Below are positions 24,231-59,432 of a stretch of 64,000 nt of DNA, piece by piece (positions within the stretch are counted from its first letter, which is position 1; each line of letters begins with the position of its first letter). The notes under the pieces were generated by a model, which saw only the letters and a list, made by a program, of their open reading frames with translations, was not told where the DNA came from and did no database searches. The stretch comes from Setoptus koraiensis (taxonomy: Eukaryota > Animalia > Arthropoda): positions 13,516,001-13,580,000 of the forward strand of contig CM106585.1 of the NCBI GenBank assembly GCA_048013815.1, given 5' to 3'. Made by a program: the position numbers and the translations under genes.

Positions 24231-24231
<1 letters not shown>

Positions 24232-24317
<86 letters not shown>
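24232..24317. repeat. (CA)n microsatellite, ~43 units
   Basis: Perfect run. Confidence 0.99.
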
Positions 24318-24318
<1 letters not shown>

Positions 24319-26304
24319 AGCCGTGTCGCCAGCTAGCCGCTGCAATTTGGAGCAGATATGCAGTAATGCAGTCGGCCATTGTTGAGCTAGCTAGCGAGCG
24401 GCTAGCCAGCCAGCCAGCCAGCCAGCCAGCAGCAGCAAATTTTTCATTTAAAATATTCATCTCACACTCACCTATGGACGCGCATGCGGCGAGAGAGCCA
24501 CCCAAACAACGAATTGAGGTGAGCAGTTGAGACAATTTTGTTGCAACATCACACATGTGTAGTGGCCCGGTGTAAGCATGCTGCAAGTGCACAGTGGCTG
24601 CAACTTTTATACATAGTACGATCAAAAGCTGGCTGGCCTGTGGTGGGTATGGCACAACACATCGTGTTCGTATGTATACAACTTATACTGTATAACTTAT
24701 ACACTGTATGCCAGTACAGTTGTGGGCTTCAGTTTCTCGCTCGGCTCTGGGATGATGCCAAAATGGTCGCTCTATCCAATTTAAATTATTATTTACATCG
24801 AGAGAGAAAGAATAATTCCTAAACCAAAATGAGTTCATGTGCTGTTGTTTACAAAAAACAATAATCAACTAGACTGTCAGTTGGACAGCTTCTCGTGTTT
24901 GCGTGTCTGCCCTGCCCACCGCTCACCTGAGCTGTTGCTTGCAAACTATCATCATGATGTAGCAGTGATAGACTCGAGAAGACAACTCAACTACGCACAA
25001 TTAACAACGCAGATACGCATGTAGCAGAGATTTAGAACGTAGGTTGATCAAGTGTCTCTCCCTCTCTCTCTCTCTCTCCCCTCTCGCGAGTCGAGACCAT
25101 GTTGCTAGTTGCCACTAACAACATGGTCTCAATGTTTACACGCTCATGATACACACGTGTGTTCATTGCTAACGCGGTGTTAGAGTATATATTAATCAAG
25201 CCTCGTTGCTGGCAGCTAGCGCTGCCTGATGCAGTGCCCTATGGCAACCAAGCCAGCCATTCGCCATGGGCTCTGCAAGGCATGCGCTAGCGGTAGCCAT
25301 GGCAAATGCAAAATTACACACAAAATACCCTAGGCTCGGCACAAAGCTTTCACACTCGCGAATATCATTGTTTGTGCGTTAGTCAAGGTTTATCGGAGAA
25401 ATTTATTCGGGCTGTGCTGTGTTCAAGGCCCACGGGCTTCGGTATGCCAGAGTGAAGCAAATAATAGTGATTTTCGCTCGGCTTCGCATTACAAATTGAC
25501 TGTCGCTGTGTTAGCTCGGCTTAAGTGCTTGGCGCGCGCGCGCGCGCGCTCGCGAGCATCTGAAACATACCTGTTGTAAAATTGCCTATCTCTCGTGGCT
25601 TGTGAGCTTATTCTTTTTATCCCTTCAGCACAATCGTTTCTCGCTCTCCCCCTCGTTGCCTGTTGAGCATGTAAGTGTGTCGTTGTGCGCGTTGTCTGGC
25701 GCGATTCTGCAAAAGCCACGCGATCCACAGCGAGCCGGAGAGAGAGAGAGAGAGAGAGCCAGATAAAGGGCCGTAACGGGGAGATAGAAACAAAAGTGGA
25801 AGTTGCCTGTTGTACAAAAGTATGCATTGTTCAAACACACAACAATAATGTTGTTAATGGTAGCGGATACCGGCGTGATATAGGAAACTTCATTGTGTGT
25901 CGATTGTCTGATAAGATGCTATCATTGCTGCGTGCGATTGGCGATGGTGTGGCGGCAAAAGAATGGCAACTGCATTTATCGGCTGCCATGGGATCAATTG
26001 GAATGGGGCAGAGTTGCAATTGTGACTTTCTCTACATCATTTATACCTATTGCCTCATGGTTACACAGGCCAGCAGCAGCCACTTTTGCAGTGCGATGTT
26101 CACCGCGCTGTTCCTCGTTGACTCAAGTCGTGGTCGGGCCTGACTGACCATCATTTGGCTTGGTTGCTGGCGCTGTTGAGCCGCCGACAGAGCACCAACA
26201 GCATGCCAACAGTGCGCCAACAGTGCTGTGCCCCGGCCGGCCGACTAACCATTGACAAATGGCCGGCAACGGTGGGTCATTGTCACGAGCACGGCCACGA
26301 CCAC

Positions 26305-26358
26305 GCAACGAGAGCAACGAGAGCAACGAGAGCAACGAGAGCAACTAGAGCAACAAGA
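26305..26358. repeat. 9-bp tandem repeat (GCAACGAGA)x6
   Basis: Four perfect units followed by gcaactaga and gcaacaaga. Confidence 0.95.
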
Positions 26359-26830
26359 GCAGCGCATAGCGCCGAATCAACCGGGAGGCCAAATCTCGGC
26401 GCTCCTAATGACACAAACTGCCGTACAATGGTGCCATATTGTTTTGCCCTGCGTTCGCAGACACTTCTCCTCACCTAGCGGTGGCCTAATGGAGAGCATC
26501 GGGCATTACGGCCCGAAACACGAGCGAGCGCGCGCGCGCGCGCGCTTCCTTTTTGTCTCATTGTGCGTGCCTCGATTCGTGTGTCGGCTCTTTCGGTTGC
26601 GCATCATCTGTTGCGTTCGGTACAGAACTTGTGGACCAGAAGGTGACGCCGAACCGGAACCCGGAATCGTGTGCGACCAGCCGCGCTGAGAGCCATTAGA
26701 CACAGATTATGTGCTGACCCCGGCGATATGATTTATACGGCACGTCTACTAACCGACGACACTTACTCGCCGCCACTAATGCCGGGGGGTTTGTCCAAAG
26801 CCGCCGGTCCTCGCGGGCCCATTCTGGCTC

Positions 26831-26930
26831 GAACTGCACAACGTCCCCATGATCGGCACACCGTCCGCGTGATCGGCACACCGTCCGCGTGATCGGCGCA
26901 CTGTTTGCATGATCGGCACACGATCACAGG
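26831..26930. repeat. 20-bp minisatellite, 5 units (core GATCGGCACA-CCGTCCGCGT)
   Basis: Units start at 26831, 26851, 26871, 26891 and 26911; units 2 and 3 are identical. Confidence 0.93.
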
Positions 26931-28086
26931 AGTCGGGATGTCGCGCGCGCGCGATCGAATCGCGTAATTAATGTTCGCCCATTCGACCGATGGCAGACGC
27001 CCATTGGGACGCAGCGCGCCAGAATGACATTTGGCGCTGAATCGCGGTGGGACCATGTGCTGTCATCGCGAGTCGCGACAGTGACACGGAGCGCAGTTAT
27101 CGATTGTTACATCACGCGCGCATTTCTTCGTTTGTTAGTATGATTTTGCTCATTAGTTTGCAGCGCTCGCTCTTGGCAACGCCGACGGGCCAATGTCACA
27201 TTGGCAATGTGACACCTGTGCAGGTTTGTGTGGTTGCCAGTGCAACTGGCCAGTCAACGGTGCATGTTTGCTGGCCATTGGCCGCCACCGATGGCGGTTG
27301 CCAGCGATCGCCAACAACAGCACATGTTGTTGCGACATGCGCGACATGTGCACATGAGCTTGCGCACGCCGCATGTATTACATAAGCGTATTACATAAGC
27401 GCATTACAACTTGTGGAGCTACAACATGATGAAACTGATTTCAACAAGTTGCGCAACAACAATAACAACCAATGGACATCTAGATTGGCACCTTGCACTG
27501 GGCGAATCGCCCTCATTAATCTAGCCAGAGAGAGAGAGAGCGGCCCTTTGTTTGTCGACGTGTGTTACTACTGGCTGTTATGTTGGCAACACTCAGCATC
27601 GCAGCCAGCTAATCTGGTTAGGTGTATAGAAGCAACTAACAGCGGCCGTCGGTCGAGCAGCCCATTCGAGCCAGCACCGGCTCGAGTGTTAGCGAAAACC
27701 TGATACGTAGACAAAAAGCCAGCGGAAAGAACAAACATGAGCGCAAGTTGTTTAGTTGTTTGTGTGTGTCTCAATGGTTCTTTCAAATTAACTGAAACAA
27801 GAGATTATAATACATTTCTTGAATTGAATGCAGGCTGTGGTAGCAGCTGAATCGGTAGGCTGTCATAGTAGTTGATAGTGGTTGCGAGTGAGCTATAGTA
27901 GTGGCGCTCCTGGCCAACTATATAATGTATGGCAGCCACTATGGCAGCGCCGCAGTGGTAATTGCAAAAGTTGTCGTAGTTGCTCAAGTTGTTGCTCATG
28001 TCATTTATGATTATGATGGCTGTTATTGTTGGCATATACCTTTTAGTCTAAAAACAATTGCAGACATGGCCGCCATTTAGCCAATG

Positions 28087-28087
<1 letters not shown>

Positions 28088-28132
<45 letters not shown>
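28088..28132. repeat. (GTT)n microsatellite
   Basis: Perfect run. Confidence 0.96.
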
Positions 28133-29861
28133 GCGTAGTGGCAGTGCGTTGCGTTGCGCTGCGCTGCGTTGGCTTGCCTAAAAACAATGTGCTAACAATG
28201 CGCACATGAACATGCTGCGCACGCAGTTGGTGCCGCTGCACACAATCTGCAGCTTACAGTCTGCATTCGGGGCTCAACACTGCACTGTACTGTACCTGGT
28301 GGTAGTAATCTGCAGATTGTTTGTCAGCACACTGCAGTCTGGTGAGCACGGCGCTGCTGTCTGCGGCGAGCAGTGGGCCACCAACGCACGCGTCATGGCC
28401 ATTGATAACAGCAACCCATTGCTCGCCATCGGACTTGTTGCGTACACATGGATATATGGCTGTATATATAGGGATATATCCATATATACGATACATGTAT
28501 CGTATATGTGGAGACACATATGGGCAATATGGCCAACCAGGCCAATATGCGCAATACACGGCCAACACAAAATGCCTGTATGAGGCTAATTGATGATTGC
28601 CAATCGACGCAATCGGCGCTGTCGATCGCGTTGGTGTTGGCGTCCAGCTTGCACAAGATATTGGGAATGCGAGCGGCGACAAGTGCGCACCAACGGACGA
28701 GCAAGTGTGTCAATGCCAACCTGTGGTCAAAAATAGACTGTAAGTGGGTCATGCCACACTCAATCCGGTCCAACAATTAGGCGGCTCAATCATTGTTTCG
28801 CGGGCGCTTGTTGCAGCGAATCTCGGGCCCGTGCATCGCACTTGTTCTCACATTCAGGTTCTCAGGTGGCTCCTGCTATCTACTCTAACGTCGTAGTAGT
28901 ACTATGCACTTTGCGTGTATATACGAATCATGTTATACCCACACGACATTCGCCGGCGCAACACCATTGGGCGAGTTTGCGTTTGCAAACTGTTGCAAAA
29001 AGTGTGCACCTTGGCGACGCACACATGCGCCATTTTGTCTGTTGTTGGTGCCTGTTGGCCGCCTCTCTCTCTCTCTCTCATCATCGTCATCAATTAGCCC
29101 GTAGCCATATAATTATGTTTACTCTGCCAGTCTACAACGTACACGCTACAGGAGAGACAAAGTCGTTGTTGTTGCAAGCGCAAAATAGATATAGATACAC
29201 CAACGTCAACAACAGCACCAACAACAACGTCAGATAATGGGCGACCACCATCAACAACAACAACAACACTGATTGGCGCGCGCGCACATGGCACACAAAA
29301 TGCACCATGTGGGCTGCTGCACACAGTGTGCGTGTGTGTGTTTCTTTGTCAAACGCGCACAGTGATGGCATATCGCGCGATCAACAACACCAGCACACAC
29401 ATGTGCTCTTGTTTCACGCCTCGCGACGGGCCGGTGGCGCCCGCTGGCGCACCCAAAACACAACTCCAACATAATTGCAGCCACGTGGTGTCCTCTGCAC
29501 CATAATTGCACTGAGCATGCCCAATTGTTCCTCGAGGCACTCACAGCATAATAAGTAATATACGTTTATGCTACGCATGTTGTGAGTGCTGTGGTACGCA
29601 GCGATGTGCGCAGTCCGCGTGCCGCCCCCATCGCGCTGCTTGCCCGCTAACAATGCAAACAAAGGAGCTAACGGGCGCACTGTACCTGCGCGATGCAACA
29701 TTCTGGGACCCTCTCAACCAGTTACACCCGAGATCATTCATGTGGCGCGTCCATTGCAATTGTCTAGCTCAGGCCCGATTTGAACCAAATAATATGATAA
29801 ATTCATCTATATCTACTTTATTTTAATTAATTTGTAAAAAAGCCCAATATAAAGAGTAACT

Positions 29862-30896
29862 ATGAGCTCCGGATCTCACTCGGAATTGGATTCCTGGGAC
29901 CCTCTCCGTGAACATTACACATCGGAGGTCAACACTCTGGGTTTGGACGTGACTAGTGACGCCAGCGCTGCCATTCGTGGTTACCAATCTCTATTGAATA
30001 ATGATTACTGCCAGCATTTTGCCAAATATGGAACCTGCATGGACAAACAATATTGCAGAAAAAAGCACCTTGGACCTAATAATGAGGAATTGAACGCCGA
30101 AAAGGAATTTGTCTTTGCGGAGCCTATGATCAGGCGCGACTTCTTTTATGCTAACTCGTCGCAATTATTATTTGCGGATGTTACGTACATAGACAGGCCC
30201 AATTTCTTCTATGTGATGTTGCCCTTTGGAAGGAAGGACTTCAGACACTACAGACGCAAGGATTTGAATTACTTCTCACACAAGAAATACAGAGACTCTC
30301 CAGCGAGACTTGTCTTGGACCAATGTCACAGAGAACTTAAATCCCTGTATGACACAAATTATAGACACGACAACATTAACATTGCACCTGCAATATCGCA
30401 ATTAGTTGCAGTAAAGCTTGCCAATGGTTCCTATTTTAGAGCAGTGGTCACGGACATCAAGTATAGTGATGAATTGGTTGATACTTATGAAGTTAGGCTA
30501 ATCGATACAGGAGCTTTCTACATGCTGCCTCGAGAAAGGATCCATCCATTTCCAGCAAGATTTTTGAGTGTCTGTCCGCTTGCAATACCGTGTCGATTAC
30601 CATTAAGCGTTATTAGAGATGAATCAATTCCTGAAACAGAATTAGTGAAAGGTTGGCCAAAAAAGTCTATGGAAAAATTCGTAGAATTCTGCTCCGGTAG
30701 AGATTTACTTATTAGATTGTTTCATTATAATGACATGGACGAGGCATATACAGTCGACTTATTCGACTTCAACAAAAAGACAAGTTTGATAGAATTGATG
30801 CTTGAGAATCGTCTCGCTAATAAGATTGATTATGATGTCAACGACTACACGTGGATGTCGAAATTTGCCGAAAATTTTGATGATGGATTCATATAA
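29862..30896 (+). CDS. CCCH zinc finger + extended Tudor domain protein, 344 aa, intronless
   Basis: C-x7-C-x5-C-x3-H (CQHFAKYGTCMDKQYCRKKH); extended Tudor signature FYVML...LVAVKLANGSYFRAVV...VRLIDTG...RFLSVCPLAIPCRL typical of TDRD-type proteins. Confidence 0.8.
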   Translation: MSSGSHSELDSWDPLREHYTSEVNTLGLDVTSDASAAIRGYQSLLNNDYCQHFAKYGTCMDKQYCRKKHLGPNNEELNAEKEFVFAEPMIRRDFFYANSSQLLFADVTYIDRPNFFYVMLPFGRKDFRHYRRKDLNYFSHKKYRDSPARLVLDQCHRELKSLYDTNYRHDNINIAPAISQLVAVKLANGSYFRAVVTDIKYSDELVDTYEVRLIDTGAFYMLPRERIHPFPARFLSVCPLAIPCRLPLSVIRDESIPETELVKGWPKKSMEKFVEFCSGRDLLIRLFHYNDMDEAYTVDLFDFNKKTSLIELMLENRLANKIDYDVNDYTWMSKFAENFDDGFI

Positions 30897-38510: not shown

Positions 38511-41021
38511 TTGCAAACTATCATCTAGATTGAGTTCATCATTTGCATGCCCAACTCACTCTGACAGTCAAACTTTCGTCTAACCGTTTTCCTCAATGAA
38601 ACAAACAAGATTATTTGATAATAAATTCCAGTCATTACCTCGTCACCTCAGCTGGCGGGCAAATTTGCGACTTTTTAATAAATTGTGTGCGCCAATGATG
38701 GCCTGCTTTTGTCGATTATGGGCCCTGGGTCCAGAACCGTGGTGTCCCGACACAGATAGAGCGACAATGTGTTCGGATAAGGGATCAGATAAAGCTCTGG
38801 GCCAGGCAAATAAGTGGATCATTGGGCTAGCAGAGCTGGAAGGCTGTTTCTCACGGAATAGATATTCTTTTGTGTTTATTTGAATGCGTACAGGTGTTGC
38901 CGCCTTTACCCTAAGACGCTCTCAAACGCCGACATAATGGGTGGCTACATCAATCGCAATTTCAACACTATTATTGCCGTCGATTTAGACTTTTCTTCCT
39001 CGTTTTGTGATATTGTTCCCTTCTAGCTGACTTATTTATCACATACACACACACGTACGAAAACTGGCCTTCCTCACCATTCAAAGTAGTACCATTGGCC
39101 TTTGTGAACACTAGTCCAATGGTATAATATATAAATATATATCTATATATATATAGTGACATTGAACAGTATAAACATTTTTCATTATACATAATGTATG
39201 ATAATTATTGCGTAAGTTGTTCTTCCACTATTAGCAACTAGTGCTGATCATTATAAAGAATACTGTTAGTAGTAGCGGCATTTATCTCAATTCAACGCGC
39301 GCGACCACGTTGATAGTGTGAAAGCCAAGAACAACTTGTTGCCTTCCTATTCATCAACATCGGTAAGGTAGGCTAATGCTGACAGACAGGTGTACTTGTG
39401 TATTGGTGCGTTTGTTTGTTTAATTGTGTAACACGTTATGGAATGAAGCCTTACTTATAAGTCCGGATAGACTCCGGTTGAAATAGAACACAACCTCAAT
39501 GTCATTATTATATCATTTCTAGATTAACAACTGGAATTCCAATTCCTTATTGATGGCTCTTGTTGATGTTACTATTTATTTTGAGCCCTTGAAATCCATT
39601 CATTCTGCTCTCTTCGCCAACCTGCTAACTAAAATAACAAAACCAAACTACTTCAACTACTACTGCTGCTCTAGCACATTGATTTATGTCGCTGCGCTTA
39701 ACTGTTTAGCCAAAACTAGCTAGCCCTTGCAAATAGAACAAGACTCAATATCTAATAACATCAATCTACGCAAACAAAATCTTGTTTCTCGTTTGATAAT
39801 TCCATCCATACAAACAGACACAATGCCAATACTTGCAATAGCAACTCGATTGCAATGCACGTAACAAAACACGAGTCGAATAAGCTAATTTAATCAATTA
39901 ACAAAATATAAGAATAGAGAGCTTCTCACTTGTTAATGGGGTATGTCTTCTCTTGCAAATACATCCATTCGGTGATTTATAACAAGAAACATGCACATGA
40001 ATTGAGGCTACTTGACAGTAATTCCGATCAGCTCCGATACCCAAGTCATATAGACAGGCCGACATATGCATACACTCTGGCAGGTCAACTTAGCACGGTT
40101 ACAAACCAGAAAAAGACTATTACGACACAAGGTAGGCCAACACAAATAACACATGGAAAAGGAAGGCACTTACGCCCAGTGTTAGCTTCTAACGTTGGTC
40201 GTAATGAGGAAATAGTTATCCCGCCAAGTTCGTGTCTTCTTAGGCGGAGTCTAAAAATACTTTTTTGCCACCCGTTTTGTTAGCTCATTAGTCAAGGGCC
40301 GGAATAAGAATTCTAAGCCAAGGGGAAAAAATTTTGCGTACTTTTAAGTACGGTTCAGTTTTGGCGACACGTTTCTCTTGTGGCGAGTTATTTTTGACAT
40401 TTTCTGGGCGCCTTGCGTCATTTGTTACGAGACTAATGTAAAAACGTGTGCGAATAAGAACAACAGAAGAATCAAAATCTATCTTCGCTCAAGTAAGAAA
40501 ATTATATCATCATCGATTAGAAACAAAACTTTCTCTGCCTCTCTGCTGTCAGACCTTTGAGATAGCCGATCAAACATCTCAGTAAACCTATTGAGACATT
40601 ATTCTTTTGTCTGATTGAGCAAACAACCCAATGAATAGGTAACTTCCACAGTCGGCAGAAGTTGCTTGTAGCAAGATATTTTGCGTATCTGTGACCCTAT
40701 GTTAAGCACAATAAATATCTTGTGCGATTCTCAATTTAATCAATCAAACAGTTAGATAAGAGGAATATCGTCGATAAGTGTACTTCGATATAATTCAAGT
40801 AATATATTAAGTGGCAATAGTAGTTGTGCAATCGCTTGAGTTTACAATTTTATTGTACTAATGTGATCTAGTATTAGCGATTGTGAGTGTTATTCAAGAA
40901 CATTTGACAGTATTTCATTAGATCAACTCAGAAACGTAATCAAGCTTACTTTTGATACCAGTCTCGACTGGCATAAGCTACAATTGTTGCATCTTACAGA
41001 AGGATATTACTGGGCACTAAG

Positions 41022-44000
41022 ATGACGACCAAAGCAAAAAGAATAGCTTTATTTAATTTATTATTATTTAAGATGACTAAATCAATCAAAATATTAACAT
41101 TTATGATTATAATTACATTATCAGCACCACCACCAATATCCTACACCAAATCAGCTATTGTGATTATGGCTCAAATCAACCAGGCAACAACCATGGACAA
41201 TAGATCCATTGTTCAAGATACCAAAGATCAATTATTATCATTTGGCCAAAAATTACAGTTGTCATTATCTGGGCCTAAAGATTACGACAGAGAATCAACT
41301 CAGCTATTGTTTCGCGATGATCCAACACCTTATTTCCAATCTGAGTCTAGCGCAATATTCAATGATAAAATGACCTATGACGACTATATGACATTATCAA
41401 TGAAATCAATATTGGCAGTGGCGGGCTATGACAATGATTTGCATCGTTACGACAATCACAAAGATCTAGTGAGATCTATTCCAACTGCACTAGGTATAAA
41501 CAGCAACAACAACAACAAAGATATCAACAACAACAATAACAACTACAACAATAATAACAACAACAATAATAATATCAGGTCATTAAATGGCAACAACAAT
41601 CAGCAGCAAGAAGTCAATAATAATAATTATCTAGACGGGCCCGTAACTTCTGAATACGTCGTGCTGATGCGACAGCAGCGCCAATGTGGCCTACATTTAG
41701 ATCTACTGTTGAGTCAACATAGAAAATTAACATCCAGTTTTAAGTCATATTCACAATCAACTAATCTGAATTTGATTGAATTAATCGATTCATTTGGTTC
41801 ACCCCAAGATTCAACAATGCGCGGCTCCTATAATTGGCTAGGTTCCTACGAGCAATGTCTAACGGCAAAAATCTTTTTACCTGTGTTTAGCTCGCAATCT
41901 AGCCAGCCTGCGGCAACAAGTCCTTCAGATGCAGCAAGCAACCAAAACGATCAACAGTCTACAGTAACACTTAAAAATCTCACACATAATAGCAACAATA
42001 TATTGCCGTTAACGCCTTCGGGTGCCACATTAGTCAATAGTAATCTATTGTCAACAAGCGTGGAGCAATTGCAGAGACAACGGTCAACTGTGAATAGTGG
42101 CCCCAGTACGAATAGTCTGAATAATGTTAAACAAATGGTCAAAACCAGATATTGTATAGCGAGCTTCAGGTCACCAAATTGGTTCAATAATTCATTAAGT
42201 CAGGACTACCCAGGCAGTTTTTCCATTAAGATTGGTGTCTGTTTGCCTGAAACGTGTAACTCTTTGTCGTTGAGAAATTATCGGCCTCAATTAGAGAGAT
42301 TGATCAAATCAACAAGACTTACATTGCTTCCCTATAGCGAGTACAACCTCGTAGGCCTCTATTGTCTTCCCGATGAGAGATCGGAATTGAGACAGCTGAG
42401 CCTGTCAGCTAAGGCATTCATAACATTCATTACTCTGTGGGCCTCCCTTGTTGTGTATTACACAATAAAATACGAGTATTATCTACACAACGAAGCTAAA
42501 GGAACTATGAGCTCCCAGGGAGGCTTCGATCGTTCGCCCTCATCAATTGCCAATTCATCTTTGAGCAAAAGCAACAACAAAAAGCATCATGCTGATGGCC
42601 CATCTAAACTAATGAAAATCTTTTCCTTGCGGCTAAGTTGGAATAAACTGTTTGATCATCAAAGTCAGCACCAGCAAGCGAGCAAAAGCCGTTCGTCAAA
42701 CAACAATTGTGGCAATCAGCATGCTAGCACAAATCTATTGATGCAACCCTTGAATTTAGATATTCTTGGTAAGAGAGCAAACAACGACATAATGCACATG
42801 CTTAATAACAATGACCAGCAACTCAATTTGAACACCATTGTATCCAAACAGAGCGTGTCTAGTGGGAAACTTGATCACCGTCACGCAGTCACAGATCTAC
42901 ATAAGAGTAGTATCAATAAACAATCGCCGCCTTCATCATCATCGTTGTCATCTTCAACAACAACCAGCAAGGCAATGGATGCAATTAACGGTCAAAACAT
43001 CATCGACCTCAGCGTAATCGACGGAATCAAAGTGATCAGTATGATATGGTTGATAGCGGCACATTCGTTGTTATTTTTTATTCGAAACATATCCAATGGT
43101 AGAGAGTTTTGGTCCATACTAAAAGATGCCCGATTCACTACAATTATGGCGGGAATCTTCCCAGTGGATACATTTTTTACTATTACGGGTATATTGACTG
43201 CCTATCTCAAATTCAGAAAAGACGATGGCAAGGCGATGCGTGGAGTAAATTACTGGCTAGACGCCTTCATTCATAGATACTTCAGATTCATGCCAATGTA
43301 CCTGATAATTTATTGGTTCACGAAGGATGTGTCGCAATATGTTGGTGCAGGGCCGTTATGGGACTATGCCACTGCCAATACTAGCCTGAGATCGGTGTGT
43401 AAATCAGAGAGTTGGGCAGTTCCTATATTTTTCGGGGCCAATTTCAAGCCACTCAATGAGCATTGCGTCAAACCAGCTTGGTATTTGGCAAACGATTTTC
43501 AATACTTGCTACTGACGCCATTCTTTTTGGTCTTATTGATGAAGTAAGCCAATGGAACTTCATTCCTATCAGCAATCTATAGCTAAAAAACTTGATGCAA
43601 TTGTATTCTAACTTTATCTATCTTCTTTTAATTCTGATTCTAATATCCAAACTATAATCAGATCGCGGTTGCTTGGATACATACTACTGATCACTATTAT
43701 AGCCGCTAGTTTAGCTATGCAATTTGTCACCGTGTTCTTCTCGAGCATAGAGGACTTTGAAGTGCTGGCTAACTTCAAACCAATGTTTGGAACTTAGTAA
43801 GCATACTATAGAAGCGCTCTATCCATCGCATTCGACAGTGCTTGATTAGCTCTTTCCAACTAACTTGACTCTTTGTTCCTTCCCTTACTTCACTAGCATT
43901 CTGAGTAACCTGTGGAGATTATACGTGTTGCCTTACAATAGAATACCACCTTATCTTATTGGACTTCTCACTGGACACATTCTGTACATGAAAGAGCAAC

Positions 44001-44779
44001 AAATTAGAGAGTCACAACAGATAATTCATGATTATGACACAAACACACCAACTAGGCGTACATCAGCGACATCATACTCATCTTGCACTACCGATGATAG
44101 TTCCATCAACAATGATGGAGATTCGAATTTATACAAAAAAGAAGCGCGGATAAACAAACAAGGCGGCCGGCTCAGGCTTCTATGGTCCATAGTGGCTCTT
44201 GTGTCAATTATTTACCTGCCTCTAGTCACAAAGTTAATTTCACAACACGGCCTTGCTGCTAAAGTAACATCAAGCTCTTTGGTGGCTCTCATGAGATTTG
44301 TTTGGTCGATAGCGGTGGCAAGATTGATTTTTGTTTGTGCCACAAAACGAACATCTAGCTTTATATCTAAATTTTTGTCTTGTTCATTGTGGAAACCTTG
44401 GTCAAAAGTGGGCCTTCCAGCTCTTCTAGTACAATGGGAAATTATCATCTATTTAGCACAGACACAGCGATCACTGCCAGACTTGAACATAATCTACCTG
44501 CTTGGCATAATACTGATCAGTATCGTCATAACTTATTTGTTTGCCATTCCAATCCACTTAGTCTACGAGAATCCTTGGTCATCAATCGAACGCCTTTATA
44601 TTCATCCATTTTTTAGTGAAACTAGTCCCACATCAATTCACAACAGCAGAATAGGCAATGGTCAAGAAAACAGCAATATTATGAAAACAAGTCCTGTTAA
44701 ATTATCGATGCCGTCACTTCAAACTGGTGCCAATCATTTAGACAGACTGCACTTCCGTCACAATGTGGTGGCAACTTGA
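41022..44779 (+). CDS. nrf-6: Nose-resistant-to-fluoxetine-6-like (NRF domain + acyltransferase-3) membrane protein, 1179 aa, 3 exons
   Basis: Exons 41022-43543, 43662-43796 and 43897-44779 with GTAAGC...AG introns; total 3540 nt, in frame. NRF motif LIDSFG...GSYNWLGSYEQC and IGVCLPETC; Acyl_transf_3 motifs IDGIKVISMIWLIAAH, VDTFFTITG, HRYFRFMP, WYLANDFQY, LPYNRIPPYLIG. Confidence 0.94.
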
Positions 44780-45360
44780 TGAGTCTTGTGTGAGATTGAT
44801 CCCAAATTGAGTATATTTTATCTATCTTTACGTTTATTTTTTATGTATATATATGTATAAGAAAAATATTGTACTTGTAGTACTACTGTCGAAATGTTGA
44901 TCTACACCAATAGCTAACTATTAGCGGTGTAGATATGTTTGCGATCAATTTCATTATGATAACTTCCGCCAGATCATGCGAAAATCTCGCTCGCATTCAT
45001 AGCTTAGAAAGCAGAATGTGTTATTCCCTAGCGGACAAACATTCTACTAAAAAAATCTCACGTGTCCAATCAATTGTAAGTGAGCTGTTGAACATACAAC
45101 ATTTATAATAAAAGGTGGCATGCTCTCTTATTCGCGTTTATAATCTAGATCTCTCTTTCTCTAGCTAGGTAATACATATTATATTAGAGTATTTTGTTTA
45201 TTTAATATCATCAGAATTCATCGAGCGTTTTTTCCAAGTTTACATCGGCTATTTTCAGCAGAAAAAAAACAATTTATCGGAAATAATTCATGAAACTAGT
45301 GCCCAAGTGTCTCAAAACCTTCCAATAAATCCCAGACAATACACACATATTATTCAAATC

Positions 45361-46668
45361 ATGATGGCTCAAAGCAAACTAGCCTATAAGGTCCGCGACA
45401 TAAGCCTCGCCGATTTTGGTCGAAAAGAGATCGATATTGCCGAAAATGAAATGCCCGGTCTTATGGCCATAAGAAAAGAATATGGCCCCAGTAAACCCCT
45501 TAAAGGTGCCAGAATTGCCGGCTGTCTACACATGACAATACAAACAGCCGTTTTGATTGAGACTCTCCTAGATTTGGGAGCCGAATGTACCTGGTCCAGT
45601 TGTAACATATTCAGTACACAAGATCATGCGGCAGCTGCTATTGCCCAACGAGGTGTGCCGGTATTTGCTTGGAAAGGTGAAACTGAAGAGGAATTCCTGT
45701 GGTGTATTGAGCAGACAATCATGTTTCCTAGCGGAGAGCCACTGAATTTAATTTTGGATGACGGTGGAGATCTAACCGATTTGGTACACACTAAGTACCC
45801 GCATTTGCTCGCTGGAATCAAAGGTATTAGTGAGGAAACTACAACAGGAGTGCATAAATTGTACAAAATGTTCCAAGATGGAGCACTGAAACTGCCGGCT
45901 ATTAATGTCAATGACTCGGTGACAAAGTCAAAATTCGACAATCTCTATGGCTGTAGACAATCGCTTGCGGATGGCATAATGCGTGCTACCGACGTCATGC
46001 TACCAGGCAAAACAGCAGTTGTTTGTGGGTTTGGCGACGTCGGCAAGGGTTCCGCCCAATCATTGAAGGGTTTCGGTTGTCGTGTCATTGTTACTGAAAT
46101 AGATCCAATTTGCGCTTTACAAGCAGCCATGGAAGGCTACCAAGTGACCACATTGGAGGATGCTGTTTCTCAAGCCTCTATATTTGTAACCGCCACAGGC
46201 TGTAAGGGGATCATTAGAGCTGAACATTTCATGCAAATGCCCGAGGACGCCATTGTTTGTAATATTGGACATTTCGACATAGAAATCGACGTTGATTGGT
46301 TAGAGAAAAATGCAGTCGAGAAAATCAATATCAAACCGCAAACAGATCGATACACACTGAGTAACGGCAGGCATATTATTCTTCTTGCCTCGGGGAGACT
46401 CGTCAACTTGGGTTGTGCAACGGGTCATCCTAGTTTTGTCATGTCGTGCAGTTTCACTAATCAAGTATTAGCTCAGATCGAGTTATGGACTAAACCGGGC
46501 CAGTATAAAGTCGGAGTTCATATGCTACCGAAGAAATTGGATGAGGAAGTTGCCAGGTTACACTTGGAGAAATTGGGTGTCAAATTGACTAAACTCAGTA
46601 AGGAACAAGCAAGTTATCTGAATATATCAGGCGACGGTCCAGTGAAGCCCGATCATTATCGTTATTGA
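45361..46668 (+). CDS. AHCY: S-adenosylhomocysteine hydrolase, 435 aa, intronless
   Basis: Canonical motifs [79 protein letters not shown]-terminal KPDHYRY. Confidence 0.99.
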
Positions 46669-47704
46669 TGAAATGTCAACAAAGTTAATAAATAAATGAT
46701 ACACATCCTCTCGTAGAAAGTGTGGCGTTTTTAACGTACATTATATTGAATCTGGCGCTCTAATGTCCTCGGCCACTCATATATAGAAGTCTAAGTTGCT
46801 TTGGACTGGCCATTGCAGTGCGTCTATCGTTATCGCTGTGTGTTGCTCGAGAAAATATATCAACCAATAAAGCCGTAAACGACTGATAAGCTGCTGATTG
46901 TTTTTTCTTTCTTCTAGCTCGCATTTACAGAGCAATGATGATACATCAAAATTAATCCTAAATATTTCAAGAAAGCATATCAGTTTAACGGTTTAAAACC
47001 AATAATTTACCACAATATCCTCACAGAGAAACTAGAGAGGAAGATCACAGAAATACATTATTGCTTATCTTTGTACTACTATTATCCAAGTCCATCTATA
47101 TCAGATCGATTGAAGAAATCATCACACTCAACACTTGGGAGTTTATTTATGATCGCTCAGATAAATCTCATCAGCTGTAGAGTCTTAGGTTGGATCATGT
47201 GAGAGGTTGAATGAACACTGTAAAACACTTGGTGAAGATTGAGCCAGAATCTGTGTTGTGTGACATTGTTGTAAATATATAATTATCAAGAATCGACTAG
47301 ATTTAACTAGACCAGAAATTAAGGCAACTAATTGGGATGGTAGTGGATAGTCTTTGGATATGCCAGGAAGAGAATACACTGTAACTGTCGATCTCAGTCA
47401 ATCAAATAACCTGCGATTACTAGCGTTACACCTGGGCCTCGCATGAATTAGAACAGGAGTGAACCAAGACTTATCTATCTCGTGACTGCTCTGTTGAATA
47501 CCTATGACTTACGGTCTTAACTAAAAAGGGGATACTGATGGTTTAAATTGAGATAGGGTATTGATTATCGATAATTATGTTGAGACTGTTCGATGGTCTT
47601 AAGCACAATGTTCGCTCGGCACATTGACTAGGCATTTACAAACTAATGGTCAAATTGATTTTTTCTTCATAGAGAAAGCAACTAGGATACGGAGAGAAGT
47701 AAAT

Positions 47705-49348
47705 ATGCTCAATTCGAAGTTTGGACTGAAGCAAACTGCCAATACTGTTGATTCAGGTCCATACTGTAACACCTCAATGGACGGACAACCTTGTGTTATT
47801 GCCAAATATGATTATGTGTCACAAGGCCCTCAAGAGCTCACCATTAAAAAATCAGAGAGGCTTATTTTACTAGATGATAGCAAACACTGGTGGAAAGTAA
47901 TCAATTCAAATAAAGTCACCGGCTTTGTACCAAGTAATTACGTGAAGAGGGAAAGACAATCGTTATTGGACAGTTTTAAGAAGGGAATCAGAGTAAATAC
48001 GAAGAAAAAATCATCAAATAACTCTGACACATCACCTCTGTCACCACCTTTAATAACTCAGAATCTCATGGACACTAATTTGCCAACATCTCCAAACCAT
48101 CTGCCATTCACTATGCAACCTTCAAACAACGGACGAACACAAGCAACCTCGAACAGTGAATTATTAGCCAAAGAGTTGGGCCCTCACTTTAATTCATTTG
48201 TCGCAGTTGATGACGCCTCTCCGAAACCAGCCGATAATATTAGTAACATTAACAAAAATCACAACATGGATAGCGTTACTACTAATGGTCAGGCAAAAAC
48301 ATTCGCATTAGTGAAATACAACTATAAGTCTCAACAAGCAGACGAGTTGTCTTTAATGAAAGGCGCCAGTGTTGTTGTTATTGAAAAATCCAGTGATGGT
48401 TGGTGGAAAGGTGAGTTGTGTGGTAAGATAGGATGGTTCCCTTCAAACTATGTCACAGAAACGCAAGCATCATCTTCTAAGGATCCAAATCCCACAATCC
48501 AAAATCAGTTGCCGAAGAAGGATCCCGATGTTAATAATGCATCTAATCAACCGAATACAACTGGTCACAAAGGTTCGCCAGTCGGCGAAAATTTATTGAA
48601 TAACAATAATCTTATAACTAATGACAATAAGATTCTTTCATCAACTTCCTCTCAAAAGACAGTACTATACGTAGTCGTAGCATTATACTCTTTTCAATCG
48701 CAGAATGACGAGGAACTGAGCTTTGAAAAAGACGAGTACTTAGACATTATTGAAAAGCCTCTCAACGATCCTGATTGGTGGAGAGCCTGCAATCAGAATG
48801 GTGAAGTCGGCCTTGTTCCAAGAAACTATGTTCAATTAGTCCCTGATATGAGTTCAATTAGAAATTGGTCAGACAATTCTCCCACTAGACAGTCATTCGA
48901 TACAAATAGGAATCACCCTAGTGAATCACTGAACAACTCAAACTTGGAAACATCCGATCCCAAGAAAATTAAAGATCAACAATTATCAAAAGAAATTTCC
49001 AAGCTCTCAGATGAGATAAACAGTTTGAACCTAATGGATAACGTTTGGTACCATGGGCAAATGGGCCGCAATTTATGCGACCAGCTCCTTAACGCTTACG
49101 CTGAGGACGGAGATTTTGTAATAAGGAATTCAGAGACAAACGCTGGGGACTTTTCTGTGTCACTGAAGGCACCCACACGCAATAAACATTTTAGAGTCCA
49201 CTATGTCGATAGACTGTTCTGTATAGGTCAGCGTAAATTTAAGACGTTGGATGATCTTATAGAGCACTACAAGAAAACACCTATCTATACGAGTCCAACC
49301 GGCGAGAAAATGTTCTTGAAGAAACCCTATCCTCGCGAAGTCATGTAA
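47705..49348 (+). CDS. NCK: Nck/Dreadlocks adaptor (SH3-SH3-SH3-SH2), 547 aa, intronless CDS
   Basis: SH3-1 AKYDY...[11 protein letters not shown]...VPSNYV; SH3-2 KSSDGWWKG...GWFPSNYV; SH3-3 DPDWW...GLVPRNYV; SH2 WYHG...GDFVIRNSE...GDFSVSLKA...NKHFRV. Confidence 0.97.
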
Positions 49349-49407
49349 ATAAAACGAACGAGATGTTAAGTAGGTAGTATTTAATTCAGGATATATTATT
49401 GGTGCGA

Positions 49408-51635
49408 ACAAAGTAATGAATGTAATGAATGCCTTGGCTGATAAGCTCAGCTGTCTCAATCCTGATGGTTCATCGGGAAGACAAAAGAGCCTAATGGGGT
49501 TGCATTCGCTACAGGATAACAATGTCAATCTTGTTGGTTTGATCGATCTCTCTAATTGGAGCCGCTAATTTCTCAACGACAACGAAATACAGGTCTAGGG
49601 CAAACAGACATCGATTTTGATGAGAAAACTGCGGAGTAGTCCTGACACGAAGAATTATTGAACCAATTCGGTTCCTAGAGGCTCTTTGTACAATATCTGG
49701 TTGTGATCATTTGCTCAATATTATGCAGACTATTCGTACTAGGTCCGTTATTTACAGTTTACTGTTCCACGCTTGTTGACAACAGATTACTATTGACTAG
49801 TGTAGCACCCGAAGGGCGTGAATGGCAGTGCAGTGTTGTTATTAAGTGTGAGATTCTTCAGTGCTACGGTAAGACTGTTGATCGTTTTGATTTTGACGAA
49901 AAAGAACGGCGTCAGCAGCAAGTATTGAAAATCGTTTGCCAGATACCAAGCTGGTTTGACGCAATGCTCATTGAGTGGCTTGAAATTGGCTCCAAAAAAT
50001 GTAGGAAATGCCCAACTCTCTGATTAACACACCGATCTCAGGCTAGTACTGACAGTGGCATAGTCGCACAGCGGTTCTGCACCAAAATATTGCGACACAT
50101 CCTTCGTGAACCAATAAATTATCAACATTGGCATGAATCTGAAGTATCTATGAATGAAGGCGTCTAGCCAGTAATTTACTCCACGCATCGCCCTGCCTTC
50201 GTCTTTTCTAAATTTGAGATAGGCAGTCAATATATCGGTAATAGTGAAAAAGGTATCCACTGGGAAGATTCCCGCCATAATTGTAGTGAATCGGGCATCT
50301 TTTAGTATGGACCAAAACTCTCTACCATTGGATATGTTTAGAATGAAATATAACAACGAATGTGCCGAATGCACGAATTATCGAACCAATTTGGTGACCT
50401 GAAGCTCGCTATACAATATCTGGTTTTGACCATTTGTTTAACATTATTCAGACTATTCGTACTGGGGCCACTATTCACAGTTGACCGTTGTCTCTGCAAT
50501 TGCTCCACGCTTGTTGACAATAGATTACTATTGACTAATGTGGCACCCGAAGGCGTTAACGGCAATATATTGTTGCTATTATGTGTGAGATTTTTAAGTG
50601 TTACTGTAGACTGTTGATCGTTTTGGTTGCTTGCTGCATCTGAAGGACTTGTTGCCGCAGGCTGGCTAGATTGCGAGCTAAACACAGGTAAAAAGATTTT
50701 TGCCGTTAGACATTGCTCGTAGGAACCTAGCCAATTATAGGAGCCGCGCATTGTTGAATCTTGGGGTGAACCAAATGAATCGATTAATTAAATCAAATTC
50801 AGATTAGATGATTGTGAATATGACTTAAAACTGGATGTTAATTTTCTATGTTGACTCAACAGTAGATCTAAATGTAGGCCACATTGGCGCTGCTGTCGCA
50901 TCAGCACGACGTATTCAGAAGTTACGGGCCCGTCTAGATAATTATTATTATTGACTTCTTGCTGCTGATTGTTGTTGTTGTTAACGCTTTCATCTAGTAC
51001 AGTTGGAATAGATGTCACTAGATCTATTCGGTCGTCGTAACGATGCAAATCATTGTCGTAGCCTGCCACTGCCAATATTGATTATATTGATAACGCCACA
51101 TTGTCGACGCAGGTCATTTCATCAATGAGTATAGACTCAGATTGGAATTATAGCTGAGTTGATTCTTTGTTGTGATCTATCAAAACAGATAATGACAACT
51201 GTAATTGTTGGCCAAATAATAATAGTTATTCTGTGTTATCTTGAACAATAGATCTGTTGTCCACGCTTGCTGCCTGGTTGATTTGAGCCGTAATGACATT
51301 AGCTGATACAGTGTAGGATGTAGGTGGCAACGCAGATAATGTAATTATAATCATCAATGTTAACCTTCTGATTGATTTGGTCATCTTAAATAATAATAAA
51401 TCAAATAAAGCTATTCTCTTTGTTTTGGTCATCTCATAGCTTAATAATTTCTTTCTACAAGACACAACAATTGCAGCTTCCGCCAGTCGCGACTGGGATC
51501 AAAAGTGAACTTGATCACCTTTTTGAATTAATCCGACGAAAAAATATTGTCATTCGCTCTAGAATAGCATTCACAGTCGCCACAACTAGATAACATCAGA
51601 ACAGTAAATTTGTAAACAAAATCGATTGATACCTC
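49408..51635 (-). pseudogene. Inverted, rearranged partial duplicate of the nrf-6-like gene
   Basis: The reverse complement aligns by eye to 40830-42193, 43057-43532 and again 41940-42440. It carries nonsense codons (e.g. GAA>TAA at 50788-50790), deletions and a scrambled order. Confidence 0.96.
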
Positions 51636-51667: not shown

Positions 51668-54600
51668 CTAAACAACCGATGTGAGATTCGTGTCATCGCC
51701 TTCATCAGAGTACGAGTCGCTATCACCATTAGTACCGTCCATTCTCCTTTGAAAAGCTGCTTGTTGATTTGTTGGCTTAGTCTTCGCTGCTTTAGCAGCA
51801 TAATACTGAGGCTGAGCAGGTTGGCAAAAGCCTCTATTGTCCATAACATTGTTCTTAGTAAGACGTGGTTGTGGTTGTGGCGGTCTACTCTTACGGACCC
51901 CTTCCTCGGATAATGATTGCAGTTTACGGACCTTGTCAGGAGAATCAGCACCAAACTTTAGCATGCCAGTTGGATATGCATAACTCATAATATTAAAATG
52001 ATGATGAGGCCTAAGTTGAGCGGACGGGAAGTTGAAAGATGAGAATGAAGAAAGGGATGAAGACTTTGACAATGTGGGTGAGGGTTGACCATTGTCTGAA
52101 CTTGTTGCGGTATTAACACTATTCATAGATGGTGCTTTATCCTTTTTGGGATCAGGCTCGATTTTGAATGATAGGTCAAATAAATCTCTCTCATCATCAC
52201 AAGTATCACAGCTAAGTCCTCTGTTGATATATTCTTGAATCCTTTTACGCATCAGCCATTCTTCGTACATCTTTTTGTGATCTCTCGAATCATTCAAAAA
52301 TTTATCCAGATATGGTTTCGATGAATATTTAGTTACTTGATTGACTTGCTTAGCTACAAGACGCATCTTGTCAAAATTTACCAACGTCGCAACATCATGT
52401 TTGTTGTCCTCTTCATCCTTAACATAGGTTGGATTTTCTTTTATAAAATAAAAATCTTTCTTGACTTGGGGAAATAGTGGTATTGCTGGAGGCTCTGTTT
52501 CGGACAATAGAGTACGGTATTTTGACATATTTTTTGATGGATTGAAAATTGAATTTAATTCATCAAACATATTTTTATATGCCGTATCAAGCTTTTCGTT
52601 GGTTCTCTTTAGCCTTAATATACATCCATGGCCCAGACCAGATATTATGGCAAATAAAGAGTTGAAATTTTTCAACTTGTTGCACTCTTTTGCTATAAGC
52701 AAAAACTTTTTCATTATTTTGACTCGGTTGTCTCGTTTTGTTTCTCTGAGTATTTCATTTACAACCCAAAACATCAATTTATTAGAGATGTTGGCAAAAT
52801 CTTTGTACTCCGTCATCCAATCGGATGGTATAACGGGACTAGGACTTTCGAAAAAAGTATCGTATAGGAATTGTTGTGGCTCGATACGCCTGAATTTTGC
52901 AAAGTCCATTAATGTCAATTCCTTTGCAAATAGACTTGGGTCCAAATTGATAATATTGACATCCTCTGGACAATCTTTAGTGATTTCATTGAACAGGGAA
53001 TCTCCACCTTCTTCCAAGCGAGTCGGAGCATTGTTTTTTATGTAAAATCTAGATCGTAGAGGGGCCCGAGAAGCCAAATTGGCCATCTGTTCTGGAAGCC
53101 GTCTTTGTTTAATTGTTTTTGCTTCAGGCACAACTGAAACTTCAAACAGTGCCCAATCTAGTGAAGATGATTGATTCTGATTGTTGGCTAGATTAAATTC
53201 CTTCACAGCAATCATCACGATTTCTCTGGCAGTGGTTTCTTCGTGAATCAAAAGATACTTAGAATCATTCGTAGCAGCATTGAAGACTCTGACTACATTA
53301 ATTTGTTGATTAGCAGTGCTGATCATGGATGATAGAGACGACTTTCTCCTACCTTTGGATAAGTTGAGCATCTCATAATATTCCAATGGATTATACTTGA
53401 TCGTTAATGATAGATGAGTTGCTTCATTGAAAATCTTTTGTGCATCGGCTAATTTGATAACACGAAAATTGATGTTATTGACTTCTAGTATTTGATCACC
53501 AGGCTTTAATATGTGTGATCTATCAATATTATTGTTGCGATGACGATCTTCAATGGCAACCATTGATAATGAGGTAGTTAATGATGAATTTGAGAAACTA
53601 GAGGCACTTCTTGTAATTGTGTCATGGGGATTGGTTGGATAATTAAAAACTTGAGATACAAAAATGCCGCAATTCTTGTCATAACCCCCCGAGATTGTGA
53701 AGGGTAAATGCTCCTCTCGACTAGATCTTGAGATTGTGATTTGCCTAGTTCTGGACTTAGCCGATAATGTGGCATGCAATAGATTCAATCCATCTTCCAT
53801 CGATTGTGTCTTGAGACGACGCTCCAAGTTTAGGAAAAAAGAGTGAGAGTAGTTACTATCAACTTCAAAGTCTTGATAGTAAGAGCCCAACCAGTTCAAA
53901 ACTATTTTGACCACTTTGTTTTTGTCCGGGCCTTCACTGAGCCAGTTCAAGAGTCGATCACAGACTTTGGCCATTCCTGGAGGCAAACGATGGTTTTGGT
54001 TGTAGCCGTCATTGCGCATAAAAACTCTAAACGTTAACAGAAAATCGTCTACAAATGTAGGATCATATAAGTCGGATCCATCCACCAGGGCAGCCAGAAG
54101 TCTGTCTTCGGTTGCCTATAGATAAAGATAGATTCCAGAGAAAAAGGTAGAAAGAGAGAAGACAGTTGTTGATTAGATCGACGGTTCCAGGGCGGGAAAG
54201 ATTTATCTCTGAAGATTTTTTTTTTTCAGTTGAAAGGCCTCCATGTTTTATCTTTCATACGACGAGAACGATCAAACAATAGTTTCGATTCGGTCTCTGT
54301 CTCATGAGTGCAAGGATGGAATTCATCATAATAAATAATTGTGATACATGTTGCGCATATTGGCAATGTTGATTTGTGACTTACCTTGACAATCACATGC
54401 CCTTTGGCAATGGGGCTATTGTAGGAATGTGTGAAGTTAGAAGTGCTGTCTTTACATAGGTCTTGATCAACATTCACTTTATAATGGCTGACGCATATAA
54501 CCTTTTTAGATCTATCTCTAATTCTCATTACTTGTTGAATAGGAAAATAAGATTCATTTGTGAGTATTTCAAAAAAATCGTTATGCAAAACGCAAAGAAA

Positions 54601-55442: not shown

Positions 55443-55482
<40 letters not shown>

Positions 55483-56193
55483 TTTGCTTGCAGGCCAAGC
55501 CTACGTCAACTGCCACACAATGCTCTATCTGCTTTCAAGTAATCTGCCTTCGGGTGCGTGTGTCATCTCAAGCAGACTCTAGTATTGCATCGTGTGCCCA
55601 TACAAAATGTGCCTGTTGCTTACTTTGTGCCTTTGTCCTTGCTTTCTTGTGTGCGTGCGCCTCTTCAATAGCAAAATGCATAAACTGTGCACAGCAGACA
55701 CGATACAATTTGTGTGCTATTTCTACAATTGTGCTAACCAAGTCGCTTCACTCGCTCAGCAACAGTTGCTGGGACCTGCATGAGCTCCCTCTACACACTA
55801 GGCCCACGAACTAAATTTACAAGGACTTATCTCACGGAGATTCTCACCTTCCACTCTGTGATACACTGATCAAAATGGCATATTGCTGCCTCAACTGCAC
55901 TGTTTCTGCTTTGCTTACATCCTTCGCCTTGCCCGATTGTGGTCAGTTCTAGATATACAATGTAGCTCCATGTTCACAACTGGACTTTTCAAGTAATGTG
56001 CACATGAATTTAAATACAGAATTTGGAGGACCACAAAAAGTGATATTCAAACCTAATAACAATGTAGATATGTGTTTATAGATTAAGTTCACAACAAAAC
56101 AGGCACGGATCTTGTTTTCTCTTTATTGATCAATGGTCGATAGAAATAGATCATCAATGGATTCATAACCAATATGCTCTTGATACCAGTTTT

Positions 56194-58674: not shown

Positions 58675-59432
58675 CTGACAAGACTAAAGCGCCAGATTCA
58701 AACGCTGCTACAGAAATTCTGTAACAGAGTTAGTCATTGATTAAAACAAACCCAGAGAAGTTCTGACTAATCGAACAAGCGCGACATATCCAAGTTTCGA
58801 TGCTTGATCTTATTCATTTTGTTTACATGAGTCGCGGGGATAAGTTTCTCATAGAACAGTTTCTCGCCGGTTGAACTCGTATTGATGGGTGTTTTCTTGT
58901 AACACTCTATAAGATTGAAAAAAGTCTTTTAGTTTTTACTCTGACCTATAAAGAACAATTTATCGACATAATGGAACTGTTCTCTAGTCTTAAAATTGTT
59001 GAGGCTGGTCAAGAGTTCCCTAATGTGATTATGTTATTTGCTTTGAGAAAATTGTTCTGTTGTCATCTTGTAGGAGGGGCCTTTCCCTTTTGGTCTGACA
59101 TGTTAATGATCAGTCTAGTGCCAAGCAGCAGTTTACATGACACACTTCTGATACAATGCGGTGTCGAGCAATGTCATGAATGTTTCCAGCAATGACAAGA
59201 GATAAGAGCATGTCATATCTTAAACGATCATGCACATGAGAAGTTGTAGCTAATTTTGTTATAATCGTCTTTCCAGATCGATATTCAAGATAATGTGATA
59301 ATGATATAAAGTGAACAAGTGTAATAGTGGCATGGAGCTTATGTGTTGCACTCATACAAAGTACACAAATCACGAGTAGACCAGCTATTGTTAGTAACGA
59401 TTTGTTACAAAACAGAAATGATCAACTTAGAC

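Follow-up and report, generated by a model that had tools for sequence, protein, structure and literature searches.

The window, a stretch of 64,000 nucleotides from Setoptus koraiensis, is part of a 48.76-Mb assembly with two chromosome-scale pieces. It is animal DNA, AT-rich (41% G+C), and its genes are long and nearly without introns. The scarcity of introns, like the size and the two chromosomes of the genome, is as expected of an eriophyoid mite. Within it, positions 24001-30000 reach a G+C fraction of 0.48-0.54, compared with about 0.40 in the rest of the window. The features around the locus of interest are listed below in the order in which they occur.

41022-44779, plus strand: intact NRF-6-like acyltransferase gene (the parent), with NRF and acyltransferase-3 domains
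45307-46668, plus strand: S-adenosylhomocysteine hydrolase gene
47624-49348, plus strand: NCK-type adaptor gene, with three SH3 domains and one SH2
49408-51628, minus strand: nrf-6-like pseudogene (the copy), made of four pieces of the parent gene
51668-54085, minus strand: PDZ/RA RasGEF gene, convergent with NCK

The copy lies about 8 kb from the parent in inverted orientation and occupies the entire space between the convergent NCK and RasGEF genes, with 59 bp between the NCK stop and the pseudogene and 39 bp between the RasGEF stop and the outer end of the pseudogene. The NCK stop codon is overlapped by an AATAAA at window 49346-49352 on the plus strand (TAAATAAA), which suggests that the 3' UTR of NCK is extremely short. 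On the RasGEF strand, no AATAAA or ATTAAA was found from the RasGEF stop (51668) until 49385. Further along, a TG/CA dinucleotide repeat at window 55446-55500 on the plus strand lies between the upstream exon of RasGEF and the next gene, and appears in the ORF listing as MCVCVCVCVCV.

The parent gene has three coding blocks, at about 41022-43544, 43651-43794 and 43883-44779, which are given here as exons not joined into one model; the first exon is an open frame of 841 amino acids. A Pfam search finds both an NRF domain (PF20146, E=6.9e-8, 33.3 bits against a cut-off of 27) and an acyltransferase-3 domain (Acyl_transf_3, PF01757, 37.3 bits against a cut-off of 31). Two orthologues (P0001 and P0005) match the parent by tblastn in three blocks and nearly over their full length; the orthologues are 1005-1055 amino acids long and about 45% identical to the parent across the three exons, and the closest protein match is 45% identical. 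With both domains and full-length orthologue similarity, the parent gene belongs to the NRF-6-like acyltransferase-3 family. Its first exon contains an AAC/AAT microsatellite (41519-41590, plus strand) which encodes poly-asparagine and is nearly absent from the copy. This microsatellite has many look-alikes across the genome in a whole-assembly DNA search, all of them simple repeats. NRF-domain (PF20146) loci number at least 40 in the 48.8 Mb, a large family for so streamlined an animal, and two of them are only 4 kb apart (C1:20081056 and C1:20085211).

BLASTN of the parent and copy regions, a self-comparison of the whole window and a repeat search find exactly four inverted matches between parent and copy, with E-values from 1e-96 to 0. 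They are listed here together with the filler between the second and the third, as they are met when the copy is read on the minus strand.

A1, old layer: parent 40829-41518 = copy 51628-50969, minus strand, 78% identical with gaps, 111/654 mismatches (17.0%), 8 indels
A2, youngest layer: parent 41591-42193 = copy 50977-50375, minus strand, 99.5% identical, 3/603 mismatches, 0 indels
A2/C filler: copy 50374-50368, minus strand, 7 nt (gtgcatt), the joint being non-homologous and out of frame
C, intermediate layer: parent 43057-43532 = copy 50367-49895, minus strand, 93.7% identical, 27/473 mismatches (5.7%), one 3-bp deletion
B', old layer: parent 41943-42438 = copy 49889-49408, minus strand, 80% identical, 77/477 mismatches (16.1%), 9 indels

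A1 holds 193 bp from upstream of the parent ATG and the first 497 coding bases, and retains a frame of 79 amino acids before a premature stop. A2 differs from the parent, in a global alignment, only at parent positions 41760 (A>T), 41778 (G>T) and 42186 (A>G). The second of these falls on the first base of a GAA codon and turns it into the stop TAA (copy position 50790), and between the second and the third lies the longest perfect run, 407 bp at parent 41779-42185. C corresponds to the start of the acyltransferase domain, ends about 12 nt short of the end of parent exon 1, and has a stop of its own (AAA>TAA at parent 43401). In B', where there is also a 15-bp deletion, eight of the nine indels shift the frame. 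The parent intervals thus follow one another along the copy in the order 40829-41518, 41591-42193, 43057-43532 and 41943-42438, and the interval 41943-42193 is present twice, as is seen both in a three-way alignment and as direct repeats within the copy. Within this doubled interval, A2 equals the parent except at 42186 and B' is about 20% diverged.

A first-pass annotation of this DNA had described four inverted segments, and these were recovered exactly. It had the divergence of A1 right (about 80%, with indels), but had placed the end of the A1 match at parent 41590 or so, which is in fact at 41518, and the outer end of the copy at 51635, which is in fact at 51628. Its three substitutions in A2 including the GAA>TAA change, its stretch of about 400 identical bases, its 863-bp jump to a segment of about 94% identity behind the linker gtgcatt, and its jump back to a segment of about 80% identity that doubles part of the parent all agree with the alignments above.

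The copy is an unprocessed, duplication-derived pseudogene. It includes upstream flank of the parent, lacks a poly(A) tail (there is no A-run at either end of the copy), and has disabling mutations in all layers: A1, A2 and C contain stops, B' contains eight frameshifts, and the reading frame is not kept across the A2/C joint. No copied piece spans a parent intron. C stops about 12 nt before the end of exon 1, and the 863 bp skipped between A2 and C are coding, so the A2/C and C/B' joints do not come from splicing and give no hint of a retrocopy.

To look for further copies, the assembly was searched with four queries: the entire gene, the middle that was not copied, the 3' part and the pseudogene. 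No third copy was found in the 48.8 Mb, and the only DNA matches in the whole assembly are the parent, the copy and simple AAC/AAT repeats, which makes the parent the only possible donor in the assembly. A paralogue was also considered as donor, but no DNA similarity was found in any of the NRF-domain genes other than the parent, about 40 in number. The direction of transfer is from parent to copy, with the ancestral state kept by the parent. At sites in C which are conserved among the orthologues P0001-P0007, the amino-acid differences all arose in the copy, for example G>D, G>E, W>C and K>stop. At position 42186 the old B' agrees with the parent, and therefore the A2 base is the derived one. 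Across the doubled interval A2 and the parent have an intact frame in common, and the frameshifts of B' are found in neither. The copy is decaying in every one of its layers.

Divergence between parent and copy is far from uniform. The first-pass annotation had proposed that the copy is a mosaic of pieces made at different times, a proposal that even divergence along the copy would contradict, and a sliding comparison in 60-bp windows gives a clean step profile of about 0.8, 1.0, 0.93 and 0.8 along A1, A2, C and B', with no convincing sub-blocks of a finer mosaic within C or A1. A chi-square test rejects uniform divergence across the segments (p=2.6e-27). A Fisher test detects no difference between A1 and B' (p=0.75), and over all sites A2 differs from C (p=1.5e-7) and C differs from B' (p=2.3e-7). 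A2 stands out as a bounded tract, with 3 differences in 603 bp set against 17% (p=9e-30) and 5.7% (p=1.5e-7) in its neighbours by Fisher tests; at the rate of C, about 34 differences would be expected in these 603 bp, and the probability of three or fewer is 3.5e-12. A tract so bounded, with its donor and direction identified, probably reflects interlocus gene conversion, as known here from one assembly.

Because raw identity mixes age with constraint on the parent, synonymous and nonsynonymous counts were made for each segment.

A2: dS 0, dN 0.004
C: dS 0.14, dN 0.036
A1: dS 0.23, dN 0.136
B': dS 0.45, dN 0.114

These counts support three age classes, with A1 and B' old, C intermediate and A2 young. 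The evidence for A2 as the youngest class is overwhelming, and holds on synonymous sites only (A2 against C, p=1e-5). The evidence for C as a middle class is good, and the contrast is less dramatic than 94% against 80% implies, since part of it is stronger purifying selection on the acyltransferase domain of the parent and not age alone. Indels also separate C from the old pieces: there is 1 in C against 17 in A1 and B' together (p=0.03), and those that shift the frame can accumulate in the dead copy only. The ratio dN/dS between copy and parent is noisy at 0.25-0.58, with a low end under the roughly 0.5 expected if the copy had been neutral from birth.

The three junctions differ in kind. At A1/A2 the identity switches from about 80% to about 100% inside the AAC microsatellite, where the sequences are homologous but out of register. 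At A2/C there is the 863-bp jump on the parent with the 7-nt filler, and three occurrences of the pentamer ATTCG lie across the joint. At C/B' there are 0-5 nt of ambiguous bases. A k-mer search on both strands around the gene and the copy did not find a template for the fillers at A2/C and C/B'. Two joints are thus non-homologous and one is a homologous switch in the microsatellite, a combination that fits gene conversion together with template-switch or end-joining repair. As the fillers are without an identifiable template, we can only infer the repair pathway behind the joints.

Several other explanations bear on these layers. If there were two layers only, C would come from the same old event as A1 and B' and would look younger through constraint on the parent. 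Among the orthologues, no other part of the protein comes close to the C region in conservation, and when only synonymous sites are counted the difference between C and A1 alone is not significant (p=0.18; dS 0.14 against 0.23). Yet synonymous sites do separate C from B' (p=0.0008) and from A1 and B' together (p=0.008), frameshifting indels number 0 in C and 8 in B', and nonsynonymous divergence, which is mostly that of the copy lineage, is 0.036 in C and 0.11-0.14 in the old pieces. Even if it were as old as A1 and B', C would moreover have required a separate joining event, for it follows neither the order nor the frame of the old copy. A history of two layers seems quite unlikely. A lost or unassembled third copy, or a divergent haplotype, could instead have been the donor of C or A2; a donor about 6% diverged would give C its identity in one event with A2, and the published sample is heterozygous (PMC11920263). 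But 6% is far above the reported heterozygosity of 1.13%, the 48.8-Mb assembly has no part of the gene in a third copy, and the differences in C include disabling changes that are typical of decay in place, which together leave such a donor highly improbable. One could also attribute the near-identity of A2, or one of the joints, to mis-recruited or chimeric reads or to over-correction during polishing. The published Setoptus koraiensis assembly, with two chromosomes and an N50 of 24.53 Mb, was made with Flye from noisy PacBio CLR reads, with NextPolish for two rounds of short-read polishing, from a sample with 1.13% heterozygosity (PMC11920263), and appears to be the assembly used here. Against an artefact, A2 is only 603 bp long and is flanked by unique sequence (A1 at about 80% and C at 94%), so that ordinary long reads span it, and it has kept three private differences including a stop codon. 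Short reads are unambiguous at 94%, and polishing should not erase about 34 differences in A2 yet leave 27 in C. The diverged segments and their joints are impossible to obtain from the collapse of a repeat. An artefact of assembly or polishing is thus very unlikely.

A different kind of explanation would give the copy a function as an antisense or small-RNA regulator, in which read-through from NCK, antisense to nrf-6, and from RasGEF, in the sense direction, would give double-stranded RNA over the copy and selection would have kept the 407-bp match. The arrangement is suggestive in that the copy takes up all the room between two genes that converge on it, and presents a stretch of 603 nt that is 99.5% complementary to the parent mRNA. 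The genome has about ten Argonaute/Piwi genes, and the RasGEF transcript may cross the copy, since its strand carries no AATAAA or ATTAAA before 49385. The NCK transcript, however, may end before the copy is reached, given the AATAAA over its stop codon, and a gene for an RdRP (PF05183) was not found in the genome; RdRP was likewise reported absent from Aculops lycopersici, another eriophyoid (PMC7738191). Conversion alone accounts for the identity of A2, and most of the copy (A1, B' and C) is in free decay. A regulatory role of this kind would be most surprising. As a separate observation on the Argonaute family, one Piwi/Argonaute-domain locus (C1:15504979-15506004) has three stops within its match, which could be due to introns or to a broken gene.

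The locus is probably an inverted, partial and unprocessed pseudogene that derives from the nearby NRF-6-like gene, has three layers or more and was patched from its parent. In the proposed history, an old event would have copied about 1.6 kb of the parent (40829-42438, that is, 193 bp upstream and the first roughly 472 codons) in reverse into a gap of roughly 100 bp between the convergent 3' ends of NCK and RasGEF. This old copy would then have decayed, with A1 and B' as its remnants. In an intermediate event, a break within the old copy would have been repaired with the parent 8 kb away as template. Copying would have entered at the AAC microsatellite by homology, although not in register, and would have run to 42193, where it left the template. 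It would have restarted 863 bp onward at 43057 with the 7-nt filler and stopped at 43532, and its exit would have been end-joined to the old copy at the counterpart of 41943. As a result, the old counterpart of 41519-41942 would have been replaced and 41943-42193 doubled. Very recently, an ordinary gene-conversion tract from the parent would have re-homogenised the entire 603-bp A2 block; alternatively, A2 could be a separate fresh insertion that created the A2/C joint. A2 and C may thus have been inserted together, with A2 later re-converted, or they may be two separate insertions. The divergence of A2 (0.5%) is below the heterozygosity of the published Setoptus koraiensis sample (1.13%), and a conversion tract of about 600 bp that ends where contiguous homology ends is as expected. 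Working from one assembly, we infer the break-repair mechanism, the order of the joints and any number of events beyond three.

The old rearrangement may have left another trace in the window. The self-comparison found no larger inverted segmental duplication, and beyond the nrf-6 matches it gives a single repeat, a 170-bp relic of NCK at window 58807-58975 on the minus strand, inverted and 9.5 kb from the NCK gene, which lies within a 3.7-kb stretch without a long open frame. It consists of the last 50 or so codons, the stop and about 16 nt of 3' flank, is 80% identical, and falls in the same divergence class as the old nrf-6 pieces. This relic may be a by-product of the same rearrangement that produced the nrf-6 copy.

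The first-pass annotation had explained the locus as an old inverted duplicate into which the functional gene was repeatedly re-copied. The ages of the segments, the sole donor and the direction of transfer agree with this, with the reservation that the contrast between C and the old pieces is partly constraint; "repeatedly" comes to at least two later events. It had named template-switching repair or gene conversion as the process, and the types of junction fit conversion combined with template-switch or end-joining repair, with order and mechanism not separable from one assembly. Its image of the pseudogene as a "recording" of its parent is a metaphor only, the copy being an ordinary by-product of interlocus gene conversion. 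The copy reads as a repair scar which has been kept partly fresh by ectopic recombination, and no function is needed to account for it.

Interlocus gene conversion between a gene and a linked, inverted pseudogene is known in humans from PMS2/PMS2CL, IKBKG/IKBKGP1, CYP21A2/CYP21A1P and GBA1/GBAP1. The Setoptus pair is like these in being an old duplicate with a sharply bounded, near-identical tract of a few hundred bases, with linked and inverted partners and a mosaic of divergence along the copy. It is unlike them in that detectable flow runs from gene to pseudogene only, and in that the copy is 2.2 kb long, partial, internally rearranged and placed in a streamlined mite genome.

Template switching in break repair is covered by synthesis-dependent strand annealing, break-induced replication with template jumps and the MMBIR/FoSTeS models, and this kind of event is also familiar from yeast break-repair work. 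As in MMBIR/FoSTeS, several templated pieces come from one nearby locus and are joined out of order, and as in template-switch repair, entry is by homology at one point, while two further joints are non-homologous, share few bases or none and include a short filler. Unlike the products of one MMBIR/FoSTeS event, the pieces here differ in age, so a single complex event cannot account for everything, and in contrast to MMBIR no microhomology is demonstrated at the joints. The 7-nt filler at A2/C and the threefold ATTCG resemble polymerase-theta-type end joining; the resemblance is suggestive only, and differs in that no unambiguous template was found for the filler. Pseudogene-derived endogenous siRNAs and hairpin-RNA loci are known from mouse oocytes and from the hpRNAs of Drosophila. 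The copy is like pseudogene siRNA loci in being an inverted fragment with a long perfect match to its parent at a site of possible convergent transcription. Unlike hpRNA loci, it is without a hairpin of its own, its internal repeats are direct and not inverted, and it is known here from sequence alone.

The locus is an example of a well-known kind of event, gene conversion with patch repair, which is a textbook process, and no general view is changed by it. The genome paper of Aculops lycopersici does not mention gene conversion (PMC7738191). A broader reading, which we consider unlikely, is that the spaces where gene ends converge are recurrent break sites in this streamlined genome, and that breaks there are habitually patched from nearby ectopic templates. 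If true, this would explain why the locus was re-copied at least twice, and in a stronger version of the same reading the converted 603-bp match could possibly be a source of antisense RNA or siRNA against the parent gene.

What the locus offers is an unusually legible case of layered gene-to-pseudogene conversion, in which one interval is present twice and the old B' serves as a built-in outgroup. It indicates that ectopic recombination over 8 kb is active, and has been so very recently, in a genome known in other respects for its streamlining. One product, an inverted repeat of 603 bp with 99.5% identity, could also mediate an inversion that breaks the parent gene.
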